The notes under the pieces are model-generated. The model saw only the letters and a program-made list of their open reading frames with translations, had not been told where the DNA came from and did no database searches. Shown here one piece after another: positions 20,579 to 34,549 of a DNA stretch of 64,000 nt. The stretch covers positions 393,454-457,453 of the forward strand of contig OW569378.1 of the NCBI GenBank assembly GCA_937625935.1, read 5' to 3'. Position 1 is the first letter of the stretch, and every line of letters begins with the position of its first letter. Both the position numbers and the translations under genes were made by a program. This stretch comes from Tetramitus jugosus. Taxonomy: Eukaryota > Protista > Heterolobosea.

Positions 20579-23500
20579 CTATTTTGGGTTAGCATACCCG
20601 ATCTGTAACAATTCGTAATCTTCTTGCATCGAATGTCCGACAGGATTGGTGTCCTTGAATTGAGAGATGTCCACGAGTTTCATCTCCTCAGACATTGGTA
20701 AGATGATATCGTTGAGTATTGCTTGACCCAAACCAGGACTGACAAGTGCCTGAATGCTCTTCAATGTCTTGGATAAAGCCCAATATTCTTGACCATAAAT
20801 CATATCCCGATTCACTCTGTCAGACAATGTGTGAAGCAATGGTATCCACAGCGAACTACTTTCATCCGAATCGTCAAGAACACCTTCCGTAGATGATTCT
20901 TTAGCGTTGTCCACCAGAGTTAGCGTAATGAACTCTAACAGTTCAATCGTTTGAATCGTTATGACTTCATGACTCTGTTCCAGGAATATTCGTATACAGG
21001 CTATGCAGTCCTTGTAGCAGTCAGAATATATAACAACGTCAAAGTTTTGGTGCACCAGTGCAGAGAGATTAGCAAATGCGTGTTGCACTATCAAAAACTT
21101 CTCGAGAATCTCTCGTTCCTCTATTGTTTGGCTTTGGTGGACCAGAGATCCTATTTTCACAGATATCGCCAGAATCTGAATGATATGCTTGCTTGCTTGA
21201 CAATCAACAGTCTTGGGAAGGCTGACCATAATCGTTCCCACGCTCTGCACAACTGCATCCATCACATAAATCTTATCGGATGTGGAGTTGATGTTCATGA
21301 ATACATCAAGTATTTCGATGATGGTTACAAAGTTTCGAGACAACATGGAGAGTCCCAGAGCTTTTAAGCAGTTTATGGCACACAATATTACTCCTTTGGT
21401 GTTCTTTTGGGTCAAGATATCACATAATCCATGAGAGATGGTCTTCCAGAATTTCTTCATCTCTTGTTTCGGTCGATGAAGGTTGTAATTGAGAATTTCT
21501 GGTAATAAATTCGTAAAGAATATCTTGCTCTCTTGTTCTATGGGGGAAGATAAGTACTCCATGAGATATTCAAGAAATTCGTAGAAACCTTGTTCTGATA
21601 ATTGAGATGTTTTCGGCCACAAATCAACGGAATATGCATAGAAAAGTTGATGATGAAGTTGGTTGTTGGAGTCCTTGTTTGGTAACTTCTGGTTGACTAT
21701 GAACGCTATACATCGAAACACTTGAATCCAACAGTTTTCAAACTGATTTCCATACTCCCCAGTTAGTCGAAACAATATCTTTAGATACTTAAATGTTTCA
21801 TCTGAGTGGCTAAGTACTGTCGCTCTATTGGCGAGCGAAGCAATAAAATGATACAACTTCTTGTTCATACCATGTTCGGCACTGATCACACAACATATCT
21901 CTGTTAGTGTACTGTATGCATCTATACTCACTAGATCAGGAGAATTCACCAATGGATGCACGTACTCGAGTATTAATTCGAATAGAGAGAGAATGTAATC
22001 ACTGTTGCCAGTATTTTTGGGCAAAATTGAACCACCGGATAGCACACTGGAAGGAACATACTGCCTGCAGATGTAATTCATTTCATCGACAATCTGTTGT
22101 TGATTGAAGGACGAAGTGCTTCCCTTCACATGGCTCTTGACTGAAAGACGGTCGATATCAGGAAGTTTCCTCACCTGTTCGTAGCACTTTCGAACAAATT
22201 CATCACTGAATACATTTTTGTCGTAACTCAAGAAACTTCTTTGGAAATGAGGTAACGTTGTTTGCTTATTCCGAATACAATCAACGATACATTTGACCAG
22301 AAACATTAGATCTTCCTCTTTTAGTATGGAGCTGACATTGTCCCTCTTGAACTTTCTAACAAATTCGAGGATCAATACATCGTGTTTCATCTGCCGTATA
22401 TCCAAATTGATCGTCTGTAAATACATGTATGTGGATAGTACGATATCTCTATTCTTTAGAAACAGATTATCAACAAAACGATGAAGCAGCTCAGGATGAG
22501 AACACAACAAGTTTGCTGTTCGACTCCGATCTAATCCATTGGAGTGCAAAAATAATGCCACATCTTCATCTTCATCGTTAATAAAGTGATTATGTTTGAA
22601 TAGTTTGATTGCGACCTCCTCGTTCACTGTATTATAATGTTTCATGAATGATTGGAAATCTTTTTTTCTCTCACGAATTAAGGCAAGAGGATATTCATCT
22701 GTTGGCTTAGAATCACACTTTCGGACAGCACATAATAATTGGATTAGAAACTTCAGAGAATCGTTTCTCATTGTTGAATCATTCGTAATCACATATTGTA
22801 ATGATTCTAGAAGTTCATGAATCACATTGTGACAGAGAGTATTGCAATCGAACAGACTAAATAATTCTATCAGAATGGTGGGATTTCGACCTAGCATGTC
22901 AGACAAACTTTGGATAATTTCTTTCTGCAGAGCCGATCCAGATACTGGCAACAAGTGAAATGTAATCCTCAGTAAAAGTTCCAATTCTAACTTCATTCTC
23001 TGACGGCATTGCTCTACTAATATTTTCACGATGGTTATGCTTTTCTTAAACAACACCGTGTTCCCATAGGTTAGATTGATTAATAAGGATTGAACCATCG
23101 GGAGTTTTACATAGTTACAGAAGAAGTCAGAATCGGACAACTTGTGTGCCGAAGTTTGTAACACCTTTTTCAGTATTTTCAGGGCTAACCTATGTAACTG
23201 AATTTCGATAGCGACGTCTTCTCTGGTCGTGGCCACTTCCTTCATCGATAAATTACAGATGATGCGAAGGAGTAGGACCACATCAATTTGAAACTCACTG
23301 TGTAAGTTATTATCTGGCTGTGAAAGACTCCGCTCTATGCACACATTAAGTATCTGTACCAGTGTATTCTGTGCCTTTTTCAGGCAACTCTGTCTTGCAA
23401 TTGATACTGAAGTTGGGTGACTTGTTTGTTTCAAGTCATCTGAACTATTCATACAAATAGAAAAACATGTCTGGGTCGCGAGAGTCAATCCTTCTCCATG

Positions 23501-24103
23501 AACTCTACAAGTGAGTATCGTACAGAGTAGTGTGTTCAATATATCGGTCGCGACAGATATCGTCTCTATATTGTCTAACCTCTTTTCTACTTCATCTGCA
23601 TAGCAACAGCACACGTTGTTTATGATTGCTCCCCCTATATCATCATTCTCCTCTGGAACACATCTCGCTGATAGCAACTTTTGAAGACAGTCGAACAATA
23701 ATCTCAAAACTGATACTTTCCGTATGGTTTGAATAGCCAGGAGTAGAGGTGTAAAGTATTGATGGGGATTTGTCTTCACTGATCTTAGTGGATCCTCCAT
23801 TCCACCAACTCTATCAAAAACAGATGCTAAATGAAGGGATTCATGACTGTTTCTAGCAATATCATTCAGCACAACTTCACACAACTTTCGAAGTTCTGAC
23901 CTTTGTCCTGATAGGTGCGAAATGATGCTCCTCATTGTTTTTTCATAATAGAATAGGGTGACAACCTTTCGATTTTTTTGCTGTTTCGCTGGTGACCATG
24001 AAGATGGACTACTGGGTGGACTGTCCATGGAGGACGAGCTGCTCATGGTGTCAATCGTGCATTGGTGGCTTGACCTCATCATTCTCGATATGCTTGTTTT
24101 CAT
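20579..24103 (-). CDS. BIG/Sec7-family large ARF-GEF-like protein with degenerate Sec7 domain
   Basis: DCB (PLLLA...DCLQKL...VHGEGL), HUS (LKLELE...ELFSLFDC..N), Sec7 remnant (EDVALFL..GLDR) and HDS (GNQFENCWIQVFRC) regions in the canonical order. Confidence 0.75.
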   Translation of the reverse strand: MKTSISRMMRSSHQCTIDTMSSSSSMDSPPSSPSSWSPAKQQKNRKVVTLFYYEKTMRSIISHLSGQRSELRKLCEVVLNDIARNSHESLHLASVFDRVGGMEDPLRSVKTNPHQYFTPLLLAIQTIRKVSVLRLLFDCLQKLLSARCVPEENDDIGGAIINNVCCCYADEVEKRLDNIETISVATDILNTLLCTILTCRVHGEGLTLATQTCFSICMNSSDDLKQTSHPTSVSIARQSCLKKAQNTLVQILNVCIERSLSQPDNNLHSEFQIDVVLLLRIICNLSMKEVATTREDVAIEIQLHRLALKILKKVLQTSAHKLSDSDFFCNYVKLPMVQSLLINLTYGNTVLFKKSITIVKILVEQCRQRMKLELELLLRITFHLLPVSGSALQKEIIQSLSDMLGRNPTILIELFSLFDCNTLCHNVIHELLESLQYVITNDSTMRNDSLKFLIQLLCAVRKCDSKPTDEYPLALIRERKKDFQSFMKHYNTVNEEVAIKLFKHNHFINDEDEDVALFLHSNGLDRSRTANLLCSHPELLHRFVDNLFLKNRDIVLSTYMYLQTINLDIRQMKHDVLILEFVRKFKRDNVSSILKEEDLMFLVKCIVDCIRNKQTTLPHFQRSFLSYDKNVFSDEFVRKCYEQVRKLPDIDRLSVKSHVKGSTSSFNQQQIVDEMNYICRQYVPSSVLSGGSILPKNTGNSDYILSLFELILEYVHPLVNSPDLVSIDAYSTLTEICCVISAEHGMNKKLYHFIASLANRATVLSHSDETFKYLKILFRLTGEYGNQFENCWIQVFRCIAFIVNQKLPNKDSNNQLHHQLFYAYSVDLWPKTSQLSEQGFYEFLEYLMEYLSSPIEQESKIFFTNLLPEILNYNLHRPKQEMKKFWKTISHGLCDILTQKNTKGVILCAINCLKALGLSMLSRNFVTIIEILDVFMNINSTSDKIYVMDAVVQSVGTIMVSLPKTVDCQASKHIIQILAISVKIGSLVHQSQTIEEREILEKFLIVQHAFANLSALVHQNFDVVIYSDCYKDCIACIRIFLEQSHEVITIQTIELLEFITLTLVDNAKESSTEGVLDDSDESSSLWIPLLHTLSDRVNRDMIYGQEYWALSKTLKSIQALVSPGLGQAILNDIILPMSEEMKLVDISQFKDTNPVGHSMQEDYELLQIGYANPK

Positions 24104-24317
24104 TCTTCAAAGAATTTATCTGGAGAGGAGTCCTGAGAACAAAGAAAATCTAGTGTTCGATATCTAAGAACAACGGCGTCACTGTAAATTCGTCGCCGAT
24201 TATCTACAAATATTTTTGGACAGGTATTGACCGCGCACCCAATTTGGTTCTTTGCACAGGAATAAAAACAGAAAATTGCAGCCTTCTTGCTGAATTCTCC
24301 ACAACAAATACTTGAAC

Positions 24318-24950
24318 ATGCTTCGATCCGGTGTCTATACTATTACTAACAAGTCGACAGGACTCTGTTTAGAATCGCCTCCTCCCAATGCAAAGCAACT
24401 CTCGCAAGCTCATCCAAGAGCATCCATGACTCCTTCTTCCATACTCCACGATGGAGGAGTCAACAAGGAATGGTTCATTGAAGAAGTGGGTAATGGGCGG
24501 TACTTGATCAAGAATACGCACAATATGGCTCTGGATTCAAACGAGAATGTCCCTCAACAGGACCACTCTCATTCAATGCCCTTCCTGTACAGTGCAAGCT
24601 CAACGTCACCCAACCATCGATGGATTATTGAATTTTCGGGAGAACCCGACACTTTTTTCATTCTGTCAGAATACAATGGTAAGGCATTGGATGGCAATGT
24701 TGATGGTGCGCAACAAACAGATTATGCCAACAAGGCTCCGTTCCTGTGGCCTCTGAACAGACAAGCTCAGAATCACAAGTGGATCATTTCTCCAGTGAGA
24801 GGACAATACAATCCTCCTAGTTATCCACCGAGCTATCCTCAGACGAATTATCCCAGTGGCGGAGATGAAATTCATCCTTCTGCTCCTCCCACACAACACA
24901 GCTCTGGTGGTTCAAACAATCCAAATTGGAGCAGTGGAGGTGGTTACTAA
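24318..24950 (+). CDS. Ricin-B/beta-trefoil lectin-like protein with Pro/Tyr-rich tail
   Basis: GVYTITNKSTGLCL, GRYLIKN...ALD, NGKALDGN, and three N(K/H)xW sub-repeats; YPPSYPP tail. Confidence 0.75.
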   Translation: MLRSGVYTITNKSTGLCLESPPPNAKQLSQAHPRASMTPSSILHDGGVNKEWFIEEVGNGRYLIKNTHNMALDSNENVPQQDHSHSMPFLYSASSTSPNHRWIIEFSGEPDTFFILSEYNGKALDGNVDGAQQTDYANKAPFLWPLNRQAQNHKWIISPVRGQYNPPSYPPSYPQTNYPSGGDEIHPSAPPTQHSSGGSNNPNWSSGGGY

Positions 24951-25136
24951 ACCACAAATCTTCATCGATACAACTCTAAAATTCTTTCATTTTAAAACCT
25001 TCAACTATCTTGTTGTTATCTCTGAAATCTGTGTGTTGTCTGAGCCGCTCCAAACAACAAAGAGTTCAAAAAAAAACGCCAAAAAAACAACCAACAAAAC
25101 CAACACACCACACCAACTCAACACACCACAACTCCA

Positions 25137-27512
25137 ATGATCACCAACAACCAAAGAACGGACGGTAATATTTTGATTGATTCAACTGAACAGTTTCATC
25201 AAATATTGGCTCCCATTCTCGATCAAACAAGGATCATTGCCATTGACTGTGAAGGCAGTCCAGATCTCAGTAAGACTGGTACTCTGTGCGTGTTGCAACT
25301 GTGTGCTGTTGTTGAAACTCATGACGAAAAAAGCGGAGAAAAGAGCGGAGAAACTATTGCGGCTTATGTGGTGGATGCCTTGGCAGAAGAAGGAGCGATA
25401 ATTCAATTGTTGAAGCCTGTTTTAGAGTCGACTCTAGTGTTAAAGGTGATTCATGATGTGAGAAGAGATGCTGAAGCTCTATTTTTTCAGTTTGATATTT
25501 GCTTGGTGAACGTGTTGGACACTCAAGTGGCATATCGAATGATTTTGATGAGTAATTTGTTGAATAGTCGGCACTATCAGTTGAATGAGTCGGTGATTCC
25601 GTGGAGAACGTTGAGCTTTGAGACGCATCTGTTGACTCTGTCGAGAATTTATGGTTTTTTGGTTCATGCGATTCATGATGACTCAACGACGACAGCGACC
25701 ATAGAGACTACAACGGATACGACAACTGAAACGAATACAAATAATTCTTTATTAATGGAACAAGTGGATCGGACGAATGTTGATTGGGACAATAATCAAT
25801 TAATCAAATTGATTCGACAAGAAATTTCAACGGATTTTGTTACAAACAGCAAGAATCAAGTTCAAGGCTTGGCACAAGTGATATGTGATGTGATTGTATC
25901 GAGTCATTTACATCCTAATAATATATGTGACAAAGCAAATACATTCCCCAAGTTCTCTGCACAGCTCTGTTACTCTCTTGTAAAGCATTTGGAACTCGGT
26001 AAGAAGCTCAAAACTGCCTTCAAGTCCGATTTCAAGAACCATTTAATGGAAACCAATTTCGATAATCTCAAGAGACTCCAACAACAATTGATTCAATTTT
26101 TGAATGGTGCAGATCATTTTTCAACAGATAGTGACTGGCCAGTCATGTCTCATTCTGTTGCAAGGCACATGGCACTCTTTCACTTTAGGAAAATGTTGAT
26201 GAATCATGCACGATTCCTAGGAGAGTTGTTCAATGTTGGTGCTGGTCTGTATACTGAATCAGCACTATTGAATGCATTGCAACTCATTGCCCAGAATGAT
26301 GATGACATTAGAGATGAATCAGACAAGCTCACTTATCAGAAGATGATTAGTGACTATCTTTGTACGATATTATCTATTGTAGGATCAAAGCTAGGCCGCG
26401 CAAAAACTCTCAACATACTCGAGCAGTTCAACTGGATAAACTCTGAGATCCATTCTGCCCTGACTCAATCTGTACTTGATGCGATTCAAACTTCATTGGA
26501 CCATGCTGATTCGAACGATGAAACAAAAGATGCGTCTACTGTGATCAATATTACCATAGATCAAGAGAGTGAGCCAAAAGTTGAAGATATAGTCCCGTTT
26601 AGAACAATGCTTGCCGATATATCTTTAGTGAAAATGCTACTTCAATGCACAGATATTGACTATTCTGAGAAGATGGAACACAGATCAAGTGTTCGCGAAG
26701 ATCCTGAATATTGGAAGGTGAGACCACTATCGCCAGAGCTTGCTGATATCGCAGCCAAGGATGTCTTGAATCTGATACCACTGTATGAAGCGATTCGATT
26801 TTTGGTGGCTATTGACAGATTCAGGTATCCAGAAAACTTCAAACACATTGCGAACCAAATCATCGAAAAGAGTGATTTATATGCATCTACCATCAGACTA
26901 TTCGGTTATGTGGAGTTGACACCTGCATCCTATACACCCTTTGATCTGTACAATAAGCAATTCGTCAAGTTTGAACATAAGGCATCAGACTCCACATCAG
27001 AGCACCAAATACTTGTCATTCTAGATGTAAAGCAGAACATGGGTCGGATTATTGGTCGCTTCGGAAGGAACTTACAAGCTCTTCAAATCATGTCTCCATC
27101 GGTCAATGTATTTACCTTTAGAACAGCTCCCAACAGACTCTACCTCATTGGTATTGAAGAAGAGATACAAACATTTATTCAGAACCTGCCCAAGAATGCA
27201 AACGTGTTTATGCACAAGGAAAAGTACTCGAAAGCTTTGAACAGGAACATGAATCTGATACAAGTCGAACAAACCTCAAACTGTTCCATCTATGTGTTTG
27301 AACAAGGTGAGAACAAGAAGATTCGACTATGTGGTACTGACGTTCAAATCGACCAGGCCAAACGTATGATTGCCCAGTACACCACCGCTACAGGTACCAA
27401 TCACAATCAACAATTTTTATTCATCCCTCCGTCCATCACCACTACCACCACCTCTTCACCATCAAATGATACCCCTCCTCCCTCCTCAAACAACAACTCT
27501 CTCCAACAGTAA
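25137..27512 (+). CDS. EXD1/Egalitarian-like DEDD 3'-5' exonuclease interrupted by a MIF4G-like domain, with C-terminal KH domains
   Basis: IAIDCEG (ExoI), KVIHDVRRD (ExoII), DTQVAY; RFLGELF...YLCTILSIVG (MIF4G); W..RPLSPEL..IAAKDV (ExoIII); GRIIGRFGRNL (KH GxxG loop). Confidence 0.8.
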   Translation: MITNNQRTDGNILIDSTEQFHQILAPILDQTRIIAIDCEGSPDLSKTGTLCVLQLCAVVETHDEKSGEKSGETIAAYVVDALAEEGAIIQLLKPVLESTLVLKVIHDVRRDAEALFFQFDICLVNVLDTQVAYRMILMSNLLNSRHYQLNESVIPWRTLSFETHLLTLSRIYGFLVHAIHDDSTTTATIETTTDTTTETNTNNSLLMEQVDRTNVDWDNNQLIKLIRQEISTDFVTNSKNQVQGLAQVICDVIVSSHLHPNNICDKANTFPKFSAQLCYSLVKHLELGKKLKTAFKSDFKNHLMETNFDNLKRLQQQLIQFLNGADHFSTDSDWPVMSHSVARHMALFHFRKMLMNHARFLGELFNVGAGLYTESALLNALQLIAQNDDDIRDESDKLTYQKMISDYLCTILSIVGSKLGRAKTLNILEQFNWINSEIHSALTQSVLDAIQTSLDHADSNDETKDASTVINITIDQESEPKVEDIVPFRTMLADISLVKMLLQCTDIDYSEKMEHRSSVREDPEYWKVRPLSPELADIAAKDVLNLIPLYEAIRFLVAIDRFRYPENFKHIANQIIEKSDLYASTIRLFGYVELTPASYTPFDLYNKQFVKFEHKASDSTSEHQILVILDVKQNMGRIIGRFGRNLQALQIMSPSVNVFTFRTAPNRLYLIGIEEEIQTFIQNLPKNANVFMHKEKYSKALNRNMNLIQVEQTSNCSIYVFEQGENKKIRLCGTDVQIDQAKRMIAQYTTATGTNHNQQFLFIPPSITTTTTSSPSNDTPPPSSNNNSLQQ

Positions 27513-27588
27513 ATAAATACAAAAGGAACTTAGACAAACCCCAATTACGTGTTCTCTTGTTCATCTGCTTCAACAACAACAAAAATAG

Positions 27589-28755
27589 ATGAGAAAAACA
27601 ACAACAAAAATGCCACAACAACAACCAAAATCAACATCATCCTCACCAACATTAGAAAACCCTACTACAAATACCACCGTCATATCCATCACCAATCACA
27701 ACAATCATTCATCAGACAATGCCATTGTCAATGACAACAATAACAACCATAACACGAATGATACTGATGATGATGAACTCTTATATGTAACAACAACTGC
27801 AACTACAACAAGTGAGAATAAAGAAGAAGAAGAAGATGAGCTATTCATGGTAGCATCACTAAAGAATAAAAAATCAAGTAATATAGTCGTTGGTGGTGGT
27901 CGTTTCACCTATCGTAGCAGTAACAACAACAATAACATGTACAGTTATAACAATAACAATAGCTCTCATCTATTTTTAGGTAATAATGAACTACAGCAAC
28001 AATTTTCAGTGATGGACGTTGTGAGACTAAGGTTCAGTAGACTACTCCAATCCAATATCTATCACGTATTTTATGTGATTATGATTGCAGTGTGTGTTGC
28101 GCTGTTTGTTTGGACGTTGATCAAGAAGGGTCACCCTGATAGCTTACTGTTTTTGTATCTTGAAATTTTGGTCACGTTTGCGTTGATGACAGAAGTGACG
28201 TTGAAAATTTTTTTGGTTGAAGGAAGTGTGTATTTTCAGTCGTATTGGAATTGGTTGGATTTTGTGGTGAGTGTCATGTGTGTCATTAGCTTTATCATTT
28301 ATTTGATAAAGAGAGGTGTGGAGACTAGGTGGGAAGCGTTGACGGATACGACTTTGATGACGTTTCGATACGTTTCTCAAATTGCACGGATTATTTTCTT
28401 TATTCAAAAGTATGTTGTTTTTTATTGTATTTGTTTTTTGTTGTTGTTTGGTTGTATTTGGTTGTCTTGTTTTGTGTTTGATTGTAAGGGGGAAAAATTT
28501 AGCTTACAATCATTGTAATCATTTGTTTGATAATGTGTTTGTTTGTTGTGCAGGCAAAGGCGACAGAGACAATTTGCCAATCAGCAGTTTATTGATTTGT
28601 TTTCTGAGAGACACGAACTGTCATTGAACTCTTCGACGAGAAGATCAGACGATGATCGCCAAGATCAAGAACATGACCACCATGGTCATTTAATGTTGAA
28701 TCACTCGGATGAATACGAAGATGATTCAGATGAGGAAATGTTTGTTCGAACATGA
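27589..28755 (+). CDS. Stand-alone voltage-sensor-like (4-TM Ion_trans) protein, two exons
   Basis: LEILVTFALMTEVTLKI (S2), YWNWLDFVV (S3), FRYVSQIARII (S4). Intron 28410-28553 (GTATGT...GCAG) joins in frame to QRRQRQ. Confidence 0.75.
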
Positions 28756-28825: not shown

Positions 28826-31800
28826 TTAGAATAGATAAACAGACTGCTTTTGTTTGTCTTGTTTCCACTTTGGCAACTTTGCAAAGGCTTCACGCGTCAT
28901 CTCAAACACGATTCTGAACTCAAGGTCACTCAGATAGGTTTCCAGTATTGTAGGATCAACACCTTTGGGCAGTGGATCTCTCAGTAATTCATCATACGAG
29001 AATGTTGTACGAGCCAACTCCTGCAACTTGTCACTTAACAACTCTAATTTCGGTGTGGATTTCTTTCCCTTGTTATCTGATGAGTCGGCAGAACGATTGA
29101 CTTGCTCTTGAATCTCCTTCATTAGTCGATCTCTGTATGGACCCCAAGATTGGAAGTGTGTTGTGAATTGAGCAGGTTCCTCACATGGTCTCACAATGAA
29201 CATTCGTTTTTCAATGTCCTTTGGTCTATCTGGCTCATCTTTTAGCCCAGATTTGCATTGGGCATACTTGGCAGCAACTTCCATTGCCATTTTCTGTACG
29301 AAATGCATGGACGTTGTTCCAATCCACAAGAAAATCTCATTATCAACATCGAGCATCATGACATTAGAATTATCTAAGTCTTCTTGTGCCATGTTGTATA
29401 CACGATCCACAACAACTGCTCCAGTCGCACCGTTGAAAATATAGAGTCGCTTGAGCTGTCGAACTCCCTGTTCGTCCATGATGGCTTTGTTTTGTCGTTT
29501 AAGTGCAATTCTGTCAATGGCATTAATGTTCATCAGCTTGTAGAATTCATCAGTCTCTTCACCTTGGTTAACTGTTTTGATTGATGGCGCGCGATCAACT
29601 ATCTTCTTGATAAGATCTGTCGCAGCTGAATGCTCTGTTGGGTGACTGAATTTTCCCTTCCATATGAAAGCATTCTTCTGGTCGCTACTAATAATGACAG
29701 AAACATGATTCTGGTTGAGTTGATCCTTATTGACTTCATATGTCTCAATTGCTCGCAACTTTGCATTTCTTAAATCTCTGTATTCACTGGAGAGTCTCAC
29801 ATCAAACATTCGAATCGGATTCTGCTTGAGTCGATTCACATAGTTGGCGTACTTCCCATTGTGGATGACGAGTTGATTCTTGAACAGTGCCAAGAAATGT
29901 TTGGTCTCGTGCTGCTGTGTAATACGGAGCTGAGGTGCACTTTCAAACTCTGATGAAACATCAATAGTTAACAAAGCAGAAGCACCCTTCTCATTGATCG
30001 AACTATCTCTTCCCTGCCAGAAATAAACTAGATAATTGTCTTTGTTCGAAGTCTTGTACGATGTCATAATCACAAATGAATCACCACTGAAGAATTGACC
30101 ATAGAGTGAATTAGGGTATGGTGTCTTCTCGAATCCTTCCACTCGCCAGACTGTAGTCACATTGGTCTCAGGACTTGGGTTTCCAAACATTGGATCATTT
30201 GGAGGCTCTAATCTCATCATTGATATTGGATCAATGACTTGTTGTACTGCTCTTTGAGACACGTTGTTCTTACCCATCTTCTCTTGGTAGGCCTCCGAGC
30301 TGACGGCAATTGGCAGAACACCACCATAGTCTGACAATTTCTCTTTAAAGATCACGGGCTCACCATTTTCAATAACCTTTGTTGTGCTCGTCCATGTTGG
30401 TCTCCGCTCGCCCTGCTCCATTTTCATGGCAAACTTCTTGGCAAATTGTCTCTGCTCCTGCAATGATCCCTTACCTTCCCAGATGAATAATTCTGAGAAG
30501 CAATCAAGCAAGTAAACGTACTCACTCTTAAACAATGCCTTGGAGGGTTGCGATCCCTCATGGATCATCTTAACTTGTATCCTTCCCTTGACATCCGCTC
30601 CAGTCTTATTTGAGAGCAGATCGGTGGCTTGTAGTGATAACTTTTGTTGCTCCTTCTCTAAAATGTAACTAATTCTGTACAATTTGGTCTTGGAATCAAT
30701 CCACTGTTCAAACTCTAGATCGTCTCCTCCCTGCTCTGCTGATCGAACTGTCATGTTAGGTGGAGGAAGAGGTTGCTTCTTGTCCACAATCTTCAATTGC
30801 TTCTGAAGAATCAAGGACCAGAATTCTTGCTTTTCTGGTGTATTTTCATCGTCCTTTTCATCAATGATGAACACCTTGGCATTTCCACCTCTTTCTTTGA
30901 CACGAAGATTTGTACTGACATCAAGCCCTCTGGCCTTCTTGAACTTGGATGCCTTAGCTCCGTTCCATTGATAGATTACCTTTCCACAATCCAAGACGAA
31001 CACATCTCCCGAATTAATGCTTTCGAACTCGATTGGGACAAGTCTAGATCGAATTCTTTTCTTGCCCTTGATTTGAAGGAGCACCTTTTGCTGATTTTGC
31101 TTTACCTTAGTTGGATCTACTTGATTAGAGAACAGAGCATCCTCTTGTGCTTGGTTCTTTGGAACATCAGAGCCGGACAACAGTTTGACGACCACTGCCT
31201 CTCCATAAAGCTTACTGCCTGACATCCATTGAGCTCCTTCAGCACTCTCTCGTGTTGCGAATTTAATGTATCCCGTCTGAGAATTATTGTTCTCGTTCAT
31301 CCATAATTTCAGTAACTCCACCTCACCAAACATGAGGAAAAGATCTAGGAAGTCCTTGTTTGATACCTTATGACTGACTGACTCAATCTTTAGATATCCT
31401 GGTTCACTTGAACGCTCCTTTGCCGCTGTTTGAGAAACCAACGTAACAGAGATCTCGTGTCCATCAAGATTCATCATATCTAGACATAATGCCTGTTCAG
31501 CTGCGCTCATCTTCTTATAGGTGATGAATGCATGATCTTTGAACTTTCCAGTTCGTTGCAAATCGATCTTATCTATGACACCAAATACTTGGAAAGTGGA
31601 GCCAATATCATCTGCTGTTAAATTCTCTGAAATGGGATAAATATCAATTTGACCGGGATCTTCTTCAACAGAACCCGATCCATCAATTGACTTTGATCTG
31701 GACAAAGATTTTCGTTTCTCTGATGGATCAGCCAATCCCATTGACTCGAGCAATGCTTCTTCAGAATCAGCCTCAACGGAATGAGCAGCTGCGAGTCCAC

Positions 31801-34126
31801 ATTTTTGCAGAATATAATCACACCACATATCCTTTTGTAGCTGTGATGTACAAAGCAAATATTTCGTATATCCGTCCTTTTGTGTTTTGGTATACAACAT
31901 TTTTAAGCATAATTCCTTTTCTTCACTGAGTAGTGTAATGCCAGGAGCTGTTGGTGATGGGATCAAGTTGACAAGCATGGGCAACTTGGATTTTCCGTTA
32001 TCGATACCCAATCGAATGGACTCAACAGGAGAGAGTGCCCTCCGAGAAGCAAAAATGTACACAACTTCATCAAGTGCAACAAACCATCGCTTTCTCCAAT
32101 AGGCAGGAATATCATCCGATGTCTCAGAAAGCTCCAAAATATAATCCTCAAGAGGCATGAACATCATTGTTGGCTCACTTAACTTCTTGTTTCTTCGGAC
32201 AGCCTCCATCGATAGAATAAACTCTCGTTGAAGAGTCGACACCCACAGTTCTCTGTCATCCGGAGAGCTACATGCCACATATAGTACATATAATTGATTA
32301 TGCATAGTAATCATAATCTCAAAGCATTGCTCATCAGAAAACTTTTCATTTCTGAGCAGCTTGACCTCCTTGGCAGTACAGAATGAACCATCGAGCAAAT
32401 TAATCTTGAGAAGATTGGTGTTCGAAAGAGATGTTGATGAAGAGTCTGATGGTTTCTGAGCCCGAACATTTGCTTCCTTTGTTGATATGTACAACATTTG
32501 AGAGTTGTCATGGCGACACATGAGTCCCATAAACACTTGAACCCATTTGTTGTTCGATTGAACAGGATCTAATATATTGACCCAGCTTCCAAGCGTAATT
32601 GCATTCGAGTCAGAACCATTGGTGGGACTAGATACTTGCGGAGAAGGTGTGTTAGAGAGACCGTCTCTCTTTGTCAAGTTGGCTTGAAGAGTATTCAAAG
32701 GTACTCGCTTCCTACCACCCTGATCCTCTGGAACATCAAAAACAGATTTCATATCTGATGGTTGCAAACTCTTCAACTCTGGAGTCTTTGTTGCACCGTT
32801 GAACCATTCATCCGATGTCAACAATGGCTTATTAGACAAGATTGGTTGATAAATATCTTCTTGGAAGAGTGCTTCTCCTGTGGCTTGCTTTCTAGGTATG
32901 AATATCGAACATGTTTGAACAACATCCTTATTCAATACCATAAATCTTGCAATTTCATTCTTTCTCACATCGCAGAGTGTTTTCGGTAACATATTCAATC
33001 CTGTCATTGTTGTCTTCGTGTCAGTATAATCATTCATGGCGTGCAAATATGGTGATTCGAAGGTATCAACCTCAAACACTCGGATCCTATTGTCTCCTCT
33101 TCCTGCCAAATAAATCAAGCTTGATCCCTCATCGACAAACGGAATGAGTTGAGTGCTGCTCGTTGTGTCGTCAGTGATGGTCTTCGTAGTCAAACTTCCT
33201 CGTTTCATTCCCTTACGCAAATCCCAAAGTGCATACTGACGCTGACCAGACGCGTTGAAACCCACTGTGAAAAATAGATCGGTAGAGCCCAACCACACAC
33301 TTCTGAATCCCTTTTTACCCTCGTGAGCTTGTCCCTGAACGAACGCTACTCGGCTCTTATCTCTCGGATCAAATATACGAACCATGGTATCACGACAACT
33401 CGTTAACAATGTATCGCCACCCCTCATATTCCAATCCATACTCGTCACCATGGAGTCATCAAACGACTCTTTTGGTAGTGTGATACGACTCGTCTGTTGT
33501 TTCAAATCCCAAATTCGAACAGTGTTATCAAACGATGCACTCACTACGGTCTCTGCTGCAAATTTGTGAAAATGAACGAGATGAGTCTTCTTTGTGTGCT
33601 CCGATAGCGTATGAATACTCACATCTTCACTATTGACCGCACTGCTATTCACAATAGGAATACAGTGAATCTGAGGATTGACCTTTCGCGTTGCTTCCTC
33701 CAAACTAGGCATCTCAACCTTCCAAATCTTCACAGATCCATCTGCACAAGCAGAAGCCAACATTTCTTGATCATTGTAGCGCGAATTGTACAAATGATTG
33801 AAAGCAATATCATGAATGAGTCCCGTGTGACCCGTGAGCAAAGGCGGAGAAGCATTTGCTTTTCTGGCTTGAATGTTATCGGGTATTCCAGAGTGACGAA
33901 TCACAGTGATACCACAGTTGGTGGCCCACGGAAGAGCAAAGCAATTTTCAGTAGTACAAATACCATAGCTCTCAGCACTGATACTAGACTTGTGAATATT
34001 AAGATTTGTAAAGTGTAGTTCTCTCTTGCATGACTCACCAAACAAGTTTTTAAAGGTTGAGAACCTTTGACCGGTGAATTTGGAGCCAATATTGGACCCG
34101 AAGGAACTCTCTCTTCTGTGATGCAT
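28826..34126 (-). CDS. Villidin-like protein: coronin WD40, PH domains, two RRMs, gelsolin repeats and villin headpiece
   Basis: Coronin motifs (FKNLFGE, LAGRGDNRIR, FQEDIY); PH motifs (WRKRWFV); gelsolin repeats (SGDVFVLD, GQFFSGDSF); headpiece (YLSDLEF..VF.M....F.KLPKWKQ...K....LF). ATG taken at 34126. Confidence 0.9.
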   Translation of the reverse strand: MHHRRESSFGSNIGSKFTGQRFSTFKNLFGESCKRELHFTNLNIHKSSISAESYGICTTENCFALPWATNCGITVIRHSGIPDNIQARKANASPPLLTGHTGLIHDIAFNHLYNSRYNDQEMLASACADGSVKIWKVEMPSLEEATRKVNPQIHCIPIVNSSAVNSEDVSIHTLSEHTKKTHLVHFHKFAAETVVSASFDNTVRIWDLKQQTSRITLPKESFDDSMVTSMDWNMRGGDTLLTSCRDTMVRIFDPRDKSRVAFVQGQAHEGKKGFRSVWLGSTDLFFTVGFNASGQRQYALWDLRKGMKRGSLTTKTITDDTTSSTQLIPFVDEGSSLIYLAGRGDNRIRVFEVDTFESPYLHAMNDYTDTKTTMTGLNMLPKTLCDVRKNEIARFMVLNKDVVQTCSIFIPRKQATGEALFQEDIYQPILSNKPLLTSDEWFNGATKTPELKSLQPSDMKSVFDVPEDQGGRKRVPLNTLQANLTKRDGLSNTPSPQVSSPTNGSDSNAITLGSWVNILDPVQSNNKWVQVFMGLMCRHDNSQMLYISTKEANVRAQKPSDSSSTSLSNTNLLKINLLDGSFCTAKEVKLLRNEKFSDEQCFEIMITMHNQLYVLYVACSSPDDRELWVSTLQREFILSMEAVRRNKKLSEPTMMFMPLEDYILELSETSDDIPAYWRKRWFVALDEVVYIFASRRALSPVESIRLGIDNGKSKLPMLVNLIPSPTAPGITLLSEEKELCLKMLYTKTQKDGYTKYLLCTSQLQKDMWCDYILQKCGLAAAHSVEADSEEALLESMGLADPSEKRKSLSRSKSIDGSGSVEEDPGQIDIYPISENLTADDIGSTFQVFGVIDKIDLQRTGKFKDHAFITYKKMSAAEQALCLDMMNLDGHEISVTLVSQTAAKERSSEPGYLKIESVSHKVSNKDFLDLFLMFGEVELLKLWMNENNNSQTGYIKFATRESAEGAQWMSGSKLYGEAVVVKLLSGSDVPKNQAQEDALFSNQVDPTKVKQNQQKVLLQIKGKKRIRSRLVPIEFESINSGDVFVLDCGKVIYQWNGAKASKFKKARGLDVSTNLRVKERGGNAKVFIIDEKDDENTPEKQEFWSLILQKQLKIVDKKQPLPPPNMTVRSAEQGGDDLEFEQWIDSKTKLYRISYILEKEQQKLSLQATDLLSNKTGADVKGRIQVKMIHEGSQPSKALFKSEYVYLLDCFSELFIWEGKGSLQEQRQFAKKFAMKMEQGERRPTWTSTTKVIENGEPVIFKEKLSDYGGVLPIAVSSEAYQEKMGKNNVSQRAVQQVIDPISMMRLEPPNDPMFGNPSPETNVTTVWRVEGFEKTPYPNSLYGQFFSGDSFVIMTSYKTSNKDNYLVYFWQGRDSSINEKGASALLTIDVSSEFESAPQLRITQQHETKHFLALFKNQLVIHNGKYANYVNRLKQNPIRMFDVRLSSEYRDLRNAKLRAIETYEVNKDQLNQNHVSVIISSDQKNAFIWKGKFSHPTEHSAATDLIKKIVDRAPSIKTVNQGEETDEFYKLMNINAIDRIALKRQNKAIMDEQGVRQLKRLYIFNGATGAVVVDRVYNMAQEDLDNSNVMMLDVDNEIFLWIGTTSMHFVQKMAMEVAAKYAQCKSGLKDEPDRPKDIEKRMFIVRPCEEPAQFTTHFQSWGPYRDRLMKEIQEQVNRSADSSDNKGKKSTPKLELLSDKLQELARTTFSYDELLRDPLPKGVDPTILETYLSDLEFRIVFEMTREAFAKLPKWKQDKQKQSVYLF

Positions 34127-34549
34127 CTGATGGAGCTGAGTGTCTGTGGGTTTTTGTCGGCAGGAGAAGCAAAGTGTGATCTTTTTTTGATGTTTCTTGA
34201 CTTGTCGCCAGCTCGGCGAGAATCTTCGTCCAGGCTTTTTTGACGCGTGACATGAATTTACTCCGGTAGAACGGTGAATATCCTTTGCTTTTACTTCAAA
34301 TTTATCATGGAAGCTTCTGGTGTGTCCATCTATTTTTTGAGAGAGAGTTCCAACAGGCTTCCTCACAAGCAAGTTCAAGACTTTGGATAGACTTTGCAGG
34401 AGAACATTGGAATCAAGTTGTTCGCTGGCGGTTTTCTTTTTATTGCGTCGGGGCTAGAGCGCATTCGAAAATTCGAAATCGAATTTGTGCGCACTGGACC
34501 AAAAAGTTTTGTGGCGCAAACAAAAAACGACACACCCACAGCAGCTCAC

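Follow-up and report, generated by a model that had tools for sequence, protein, structure and literature searches.

A heterolobosean DEDD-type exonuclease gene with a predicted eIF4G-like MIF4G domain nested between its catalytic motifs

Introduction

Can a 3′-5′ exonuclease keep its fold when another whole domain lies between two of its catalytic motifs, and what would such a protein do? This question is raised by a gene of the heterolobosean Tetramitus jugosus, located at positions 25137-27512 (forward strand) of the window, by which we mean the 64,000-nucleotide (nt) stretch of contig OW569378.1 (assembly GCA_937625935.1, positions 393,454 to 457,453) analyzed here. The gene is one stop-free open reading frame (ORF) of 791 amino acids (aa), and its genome context is eukaryotic and intron-poor, with a G+C content of about 40%. 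A sequence-only reading had described the product as an EXD1-like exonuclease with a MIF4G domain inside the nuclease fold, followed by KH domains. Whole-domain nested insertions are uncommon. The usual role of MIF4G domains is to organise DEAD-box ATPases on RNA; in the CCR4-NOT deadenylase, the core consists of a DEDD nuclease docked on such a domain. Our results show that the gene for the three-part chain is expressed and conserved. The architecture itself, a split DEDD nuclease with a nested MIF4G domain and a KH tail, is very probably real, and this structural reading is backed by sequence and profile comparisons, by the predicted fold and by RNA.

The exonuclease domain is interrupted by a long insert

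All the quoted exonuclease motifs were found in the protein. ExoI (IDCEGS, aa 36-41, nt 25242-25259) with the acidic residues D37 and E39, and ExoII (IHDVRRD, aa 105-111, nt 25449-25469) with D111, are located near the N-terminus. ExoIII consists of WKVRPLS (aa 526-532, nt 26712-26732) and IAAKDV (aa 538-543, nt 26748-26765), and contains D542. Thus, ExoIII is far downstream as the sequence-only reading had said, but its distance of about 350 aa has to be corrected: the Asp residues of ExoII and ExoIII are 431 aa apart, and the insert has a net length of 361 aa. The acidic catalytic residues are kept, and the Tyr of the DEDDy subtype, four residues before the ExoIII Asp, is replaced by Ile (I538), both as previously described.

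In the Pfam scan of the full protein, the DNA_pol_A_exo1 family (PF01612) matched in two stretches with 51.3 bits against a curated cut-off of 23.6. The N-terminal stretch (aa 24-136) corresponds to profile positions 13-112; scanned by itself, the C-terminal piece matched weakly (12.7 bits), at profile positions 122-169. The N-terminal half of the DnaQ-like DEDD 3′-5′ exonuclease (aa 1-133, 25137-25535, forward strand), with D37/E39 and D111, was assigned from PF01612 (47-51 bits) and from BLASTP alignment to the compact relative P0007. The C-terminal half (aa 495-560, 26619-26816, forward strand), with W526, R529, P530, I538 and D542, was assigned from the alignment to P0007 129-188 and from the second segment of the match to Drosophila Egalitarian. 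The Egalitarian exonuclease was the best match among solved structures in the PDB phmmer search (E 1.5e-8), and this match was broken into aa 92-136 and 516-547. The next match was Trypanosoma brucei Rrp6, and Bombyx mori EXD1 matched only with E 0.26.

We then aligned 60 homologous sequences. D37, E39, D111 and D542 are in near-invariant columns, and these residues also align with those of Egalitarian and Rrp6. The four residues are present in every full-length member of the inserted family, in which the overall identity is only 23-25%. In addition, W526, R529, P530, A539 and D542 are invariant in the inserted family.

The position and size of the insert were defined by comparison with P0007. 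Residues 12-133 of the window protein align with P0007 5-114 (48% identity, E 7e-25), and residues 495-554 align with P0007 129-188 (E 2e-6). Thus, the window protein has 361 residues where P0007 has 14. The insert (aa 134-494, 25536-26618, forward strand) lies between the helix containing DTQVAY and the helix containing ISLVKML of the nuclease. In 48 compact homologues of the 60-sequence alignment, this point is a variable surface loop of 8-28 residues. In five named or full-length relatives, it holds 345-408 residues.

The insert resembles the MIF4G domain of eIF4G

The strings that had been taken as signs of an eIF4G-like MIF4G domain between ExoII and ExoIII, DKANTFPKFSAQLC (aa 265-278), RFLGELF (aa 359-365) and LCTILSIVGSKL (aa 408-419), were confirmed. 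RFLGELF corresponds to the conserved FIGELF-like motif of eIF4G-family MIF4G domains. When a profile of all 12 inserts was compared with solved structures, the top matches were exclusively MIF4G domains of the eIF4G family (E 7e-5). The profile of the window's own insert subgroup (A5) matched human eIF4GII with E 2e-8 over chain residues 28-232, which is almost the whole domain. Further matches of A5 were eIF4G1, yeast eIF4G, DAP5 and UPF2, and nearly all the significant ones belong to the eIF4G family. The window's own genome gave six canonical MIF4G matches in the profile search. Among these proteins, the insert profile best fits the ORF with the top Pfam MIF4G score (136-140 bits), which is probably eIF4G.

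The fold comparisons gave the same answer. An AlphaFold2 model of the insert was made from the 12-sequence alignment; its mean predicted local distance difference test score (pLDDT) was 62, with 70-88 in the core, and its predicted template modelling score was 0.64. With this model, the top ten Foldseek matches were all eIF4G-type MIF4G domains, including DAP5, T. cruzi EIF4G5, and human and yeast eIF4G, and the template modelling (TM) score by target was 0.50-0.61 for the best five. An independent aligner, VIA-align, was run with the model against 48,161 chains. The first match was eIF4G HEAT1 (Z 13.9), with 219 of 238 residues aligned and model residues 28-322 covered, followed by EIF4G5, DAP5, CWC22, UPF2, Gle1, mimivirus vIF4G, Paip1, CBP80 and NOT1. 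The MIF4G rows have Z 12-14 over about 220 of 238 residues, whereas the first unrelated helical repeats reach at most Z 9.3, a gap of about 3 Z. In the model, therefore, the insert is shown as a complete eIF4G-type MIF4G domain of five HEAT repeats. The MIF4G/HEAT fold proposed by the sequence-only reading is borne out by the AlphaFold2 model, on which Foldseek and VIA-align agree.

Within the insert, the MIF4G-like HEAT-repeat core (aa about 159-455, 25611-26501, forward strand) is delimited by Pfam, profile A5, the AlphaFold2 model, Foldseek and VIA-align. The first helix pair is predicted at aa 159-180, and a low-complexity Thr-rich stretch follows at aa 184-203. Since the range aligned by VIA-align is insert residues 28-322, this stretch would be a loop inside the domain. 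The core is followed by an acidic linker that returns to the nuclease (aa 456-494, 26502-26618, forward strand). This linker is predicted to be disordered (pLDDT below 50 at insert residues 323-361); its conservation is low, and it reaches about 100 aa in the Naegleria proteins. The window insert thus differs from the MIF4G/HEAT1 domains of the eIF4G family (eIF4G1/2, DAP5, T. cruzi EIF4G5 and Paip1), which are its best sequence-profile and fold matches, in that it is nested in a nuclease and has a 20-aa Thr-rich loop after the first helix pair.

The C-terminal region contains two KH domains

The KH_1 family (PF00013) was detected with 25.4-30.1 bits against a cut-off of 21.5. KH domain 1 (aa about 614-682, 26976-27182, forward strand; Pfam KH_KhpA-B at 621-652 and KH_DEAH11 at 635-679) has an intact GXXG loop, GRFG, at aa 640-643 (nt 27054-27065), and family members share G636 and G640. 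KH domain 2 (aa about 686-752, 27192-27392, forward strand; Pfam KH_1 at 709-746) has lost this motif. Its loop reads KALNRNMN, and GXXG is missing in the window and Naegleria proteins, while G-K-x-G is retained in KH domain 2 of P0009, P0011 and P0020. Thus, KH domains do follow the nuclease as had been claimed, but only the first of the two has the GXXG motif, and the safest reading of the sequence is a single functional RNA-binding KH domain. The remaining sequence (27393-27512, forward strand) encodes a low-complexity Thr/Ser/Pro/Asn tail and the stop codon.

The gene is transcribed with its insert

Contigs, not reads, from four soil metatranscriptomes, one of which was oligo-dT primed, were used as RNA evidence. 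The contigs are colinear with the gene at 95-100% identity and have no joints. The 5′ border of the insert (25536) is crossed by record 4 of X2 (25084-25726). The 3′ border (26618) is crossed by record 13 of X5 (25720-26876), record 2 of X1 (25922-26956) and record 6 of X2 (26309-27152). The insert therefore stays in the mRNA; splicing of the insert out of the mRNA is ruled out by the colinear contigs across both borders. The contigs end at 27509-27520 on the 3′ side (record 11 of X4 at 27509). Record 4 of X2 starts at 25084 and the RNA depth is nearly zero upstream in all four runs; positions 25084-25136 (forward strand) are a probable 5′ untranslated leader. Because the depth drops to zero on either side (25000-25083 and 27548-27700), an origin from RNA is favoured over contaminating DNA.

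Thirty-nine strain differences were listed over the ORF, 28 synonymous and 11 non-synonymous; within the insert, the numbers are 18 and 7. The only insertions or deletions in the ORF were found in the X5 metatranscriptome, in which a 5-nt and a 1-nt deletion (6 nt in total, in frame) occur at 25748-25754, in the Thr-rich loop of the insert.

Distribution and origin of the split architecture

An exhaustive search of representative proteins gave 533 relatives, mostly compact 3′-5′ exonucleases. A word-index protein search with the whole protein, the family alignment and region 486-750 was empty, probably because low-complexity words swamped it. Several relatives, for example P0007, P0010 and P0023 (340-380 aa), have a compact exonuclease with a KH tail. 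The inserted layout, which consists of the exonuclease N-terminal half, a long insert, ExoIII and two KH domains, was found in Naegleria lovaniensis (two copies of 899 aa), N. gruberi (XP_002678389, locus NAEGRDRAFT_79347, 839 aa with the insert at aa 165-529, labelled 'predicted protein'), Willaertia magna (KAL9652577, 807 aa) and the ENA protein P0003 (845 aa). Five environmental fragments (P0001, P0009, P0011, P0020 and P0028) begin within the insert. For four of the five, the N-terminal half of the nuclease is just upstream on the same strand, across an intron or a frame change; the upstream half of P0011 was taken from gene calls only. The survey of protists suggested by the sequence-only reading thus placed the split layout in Naegleria, Willaertia and several environmental protists.

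The environmental loci L002:4759-6725, L001:51-2026 and L003:29-2581 are interrupted, within the nuclease N-terminal half or the insert, by short introns or frame changes. Prokaryote-style gene calling cut these loci into two 'genes', unlike the window copy, which is intronless.

The assembly searched for paralogues comprises 26.35 Mb in 56 contigs. Neither a second copy nor a compact paralogue of the exonuclease-KH family was found in this 26.35-Mb genome. The window protein is its genome's only detected counterpart of the compact exonuclease-KH proteins found in plants, amoebozoans and other protists, with MIF4G added. The only other genomic matches to the nuclease N-terminal half are two weak tandem ones (loci L005 and L006; G000:C39:273846-274868, reverse strand), with E 1e-7 and 2e-6 and 35-39% identity, in one open frame of 752 aa. 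This frame possibly encodes a protein with two DEDD domains.

The closest unsplit relatives are the compact exonuclease-KH proteins, both in the sequence comparison and in a tree of the ExoIII and KH regions. In the tree, all inserted forms group with four compact proteins in a single clade (support 94/87), and this clade is sister to a plant group. The insert may have a single origin. The compact proteins share with the window protein the DEDD subfamily and the IHDxRRD and W-x-RP...A-x-x-D motifs. P0007, P0010 and P0023 share the KH tail as well, and P0007 is 48% identical over the N-terminal half. In contrast, the compact proteins have 8-28 residues at the insert point and a total of 340-380 aa, whereas the window protein has the 361-aa MIF4G-bearing insert and 791 aa. 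The compact group includes unsplit exonuclease-domain proteins of plants (for example, Apostasia PKA63462.1), and we take Arabidopsis At2g25910/AtKH7 (342 aa) to be a member. No function of the compact exonuclease-KH proteins was found in the literature searched, in which At2g25910 occurs only in gene lists. The architecture described here would give these unstudied proteins of plants and protists a first structural context.

Our literature searches found no paper that describes a MIF4G domain nested in a DEDD exonuclease. Thus, the layout is undescribed in the literature searched, while its components, DEDD exonuclease-KH and MIF4G, are already known. The database labels of the inserted relatives are 'predicted', 'uncharacterized' or exonuclease-domain proteins. 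Family scans overlook the nested domain, and the Naegleria proteins carry only exonuclease-domain or predicted labels.

Comparison with Egalitarian, EXD1 and the CCR4-NOT nuclease module

The exonuclease domain of Egalitarian aligns with the window protein in the same two segments. Its winged-helix domains (PF23713), which P0025 has (159 bits), are absent from the window protein in the Pfam scan. Egalitarian, EXD1 and Mut-7 (EXD3) have neither a nested domain nor a KH tail, unlike the window protein. The term 'EXD1-like' was too loose, given the strength of the EXD1 match relative to that of Egalitarian and the kept catalytic acids. An orthologue of EXD1 or Egalitarian was rejected on the EXD1 E-value, the kept acids and the lack of PF23713.

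Binding partners of the NOT1 MIF4G domain are CAF1, a DEDD nuclease, and DDX6, a helicase (PMC10590902). CCR4-NOT likewise pairs a MIF4G platform with a DEDD 3′-5′ exoribonuclease, and its MIF4G domain also binds a DEAD-box ATPase. However, CCR4-NOT is built of separate polypeptides with a DEDDh nuclease (CAF1/CNOT7) and a NOT1-type MIF4G domain, whereas the window protein is one chain with an Egalitarian/RNase D-like DEDDy derivative and a MIF4G domain closest to the eIF4G type. The nuclease module of CCR4-NOT can thus be regarded as the nearest working analogy, not as a homologous assembly.

Proposed function and alternative explanations

The best explanation, which we consider fairly likely, is a DEDD exonuclease with a nested eIF4G-type MIF4G domain and KH domains, in which KH domain 1 and the nuclease trim RNA and MIF4G docks a partner. 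KH domain 1, together with the exonuclease groove, would hold a single-stranded RNA 3′ end, and the reassembled nuclease would trim this end. The MIF4G domain would be tethered on flexible linkers, about 25 aa on the N-terminal side and about 40 aa, acidic, on the C-terminal side, and would hang beside the nuclease instead of disrupting its fold. The two ends of the MIF4G crescent lie far apart, which fits the connector of about 25 aa and the acidic return linker of about 40 aa (in Naegleria, about 100 aa). The role of MIF4G would be that of a docking platform for a remodelling partner; an eIF4A-, DDX6- or Dbp5-type DEAD-box ATPase is the most plausible candidate, since many MIF4G domains dock DEAD-box ATPases. 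In this view, a single covalent chain would be analogous to the NOT1-MIF4G/CAF1/DDX6 nuclease module. The more specific proposal is tentative: by analogy, the nested MIF4G domain might recruit a DEAD-box ATPase beside the active site, to give a single-chain, helicase-coupled 3′-5′ decay or trimming machine, a heterolobosean-type invention convergent with NOT1-MIF4G/CAF1/DDX6. Such a natural one-chain version would provide a tractable, minimal model in which to study the regulation of an exonuclease by a MIF4G platform. For Heterolobosea, to which Naegleria fowleri belongs, it would hint at an RNA-processing pathway still uncharacterised. The link from translation initiation to RNA decay or silencing drawn in the sequence-only reading is a hypothesis; the present results tie the protein specifically to neither translation initiation nor small-RNA silencing.

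Several observations in this and the next paragraph weigh against the proposed explanation. To our knowledge, not every MIF4G domain binds helicases; those of CBP80 and UPF2 (MIF4G-3) do not. The single-sequence AlphaFold model of the full-length protein was too poor (pLDDT 34) to show the two nuclease halves in one fold. Tyr, which orients the attacking water, occupies the DEDDy position in 27 of the 60 aligned homologues but in none of the inserted family, whose members have I, C, G, F, H, A or S. Since the nearest compact relatives (P0004, P0007 and P0010) have Ser there, the loss of Tyr may predate the insert. Removal of the equivalent Tyr by mutagenesis of the Klenow fragment reportedly reduces activity without abolishing it. 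The replaced Tyr is in line with the main rival, which keeps the architecture but assumes a catalytically silent nuclease: the protein would then act as an RNA adaptor like Egalitarian or EXD1, whose exonuclease fold and KH domain 1 bind RNA while MIF4G couples this RNA to another machine. With all five catalytic residues mutated, Egalitarian still binds RNA and functions in vivo, and the exonuclease-like domain of EXD1 is described as inactive (bioRxiv 10.1101/2025.08.03.668247). However, the domain described as inactive is that of EXD1 itself, and the presence of the four acidic residues in every full-length member of so divergent a family would hardly be expected unless metal binding were under selection. 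Because these residues are strictly kept, the alignment suggests that metal-dependent catalysis is retained although Tyr is absent. A silent nuclease is thus a possible but rather doubtful explanation.

The proposed trimming nuclease with a docking platform also depends on the identity of the insert. The HMMER pattern expected by the sequence-only reading, a split DNA_pol_A_exo1 match around MIF4G followed by KH_1, was obtained, but the Pfam MIF4G match (PF02854, aa 220-465) scored 26.7 bits in the full protein, 29.1 in the excised insert and 29.7 in a six-frame genome search, all below the curated cut-off of 30.8. Pfam detected no MIF4G domain in the named Naegleria and Willaertia proteins, a profile of only their inserts found no MIF4G domain in the PDB, and the two insert subgroups showed no significant similarity when their profiles were compared (one 36-column motif, E 0.12). 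Judged by sequence, the Naegleria and Willaertia inserts therefore seem to share only position and size with that of the window, and the MIF4G assignment rests on the window's own subgroup. Furthermore, the AlphaFold2 model of the insert is of only moderate quality, and helical repeats easily reach high Z-scores. In ESM Atlas, feature searches gave no usable matches, and the shape search gave only generic TPR/HEAT clusters (TM below 0.5). These results would agree with a generic alpha-helical repeat or linker whose likeness to MIF4G arose by convergence or chance. However, the profile, a sequence-only method, matched almost exclusively eIF4G-family MIF4G domains, with eIF4GII covered over chain residues 28-232, the relative P0009 (39.8 bits) exceeds the Pfam cut-off, and the MIF4G rows of VIA-align are clearly separated from unrelated helical repeats. 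We therefore regard a generic helical insert as very improbable.

An artefact of the gene model or assembly, with two or three genes fused or an in-frame intron missed, has a negligible probability: no single RNA contig spans the entire ORF and contigs of several runs break near 25720-25726, at the Thr-rich low-complexity loop, but the frame is continuous, contigs cross 25536 and 26618 without joints, the strain variants are biased by codon position, and the domain order is identical in the independently assembled Naegleria and Willaertia genomes, so that fusion through misassembly is ruled out.

Neighbouring open reading frames

Just upstream of the gene, a 212-aa ORF (24312-24950, forward strand) encodes a ricin-type beta-trefoil lectin domain (PF14200, 47 bits) with a Pro/Ser/Tyr/Gly-rich tail. 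Downstream, a 309-aa ORF (27589-28518, forward strand) has an Asn/Thr-rich head, a hydrophobic C-terminal half and no Pfam match; in the four metatranscriptomes, no contig covers its first 110 nt. On the reverse strand, a 1174-aa ORF (20579-24103) encodes a Sec7-like HUS domain and a Sec7 domain, as in BIG/GBF-type guanine nucleotide exchange factors for Arf. Also on the reverse strand, a 1850-aa ORF (28826-34378) has a coronin-like WD40 propeller, a PH domain, an RNA-recognition motif (PF00076, 48 bits, aa 916-976), gelsolin repeats and a villin headpiece. By its domain content, this ORF looks like a villidin-type actin protein with an RNA-recognition motif.

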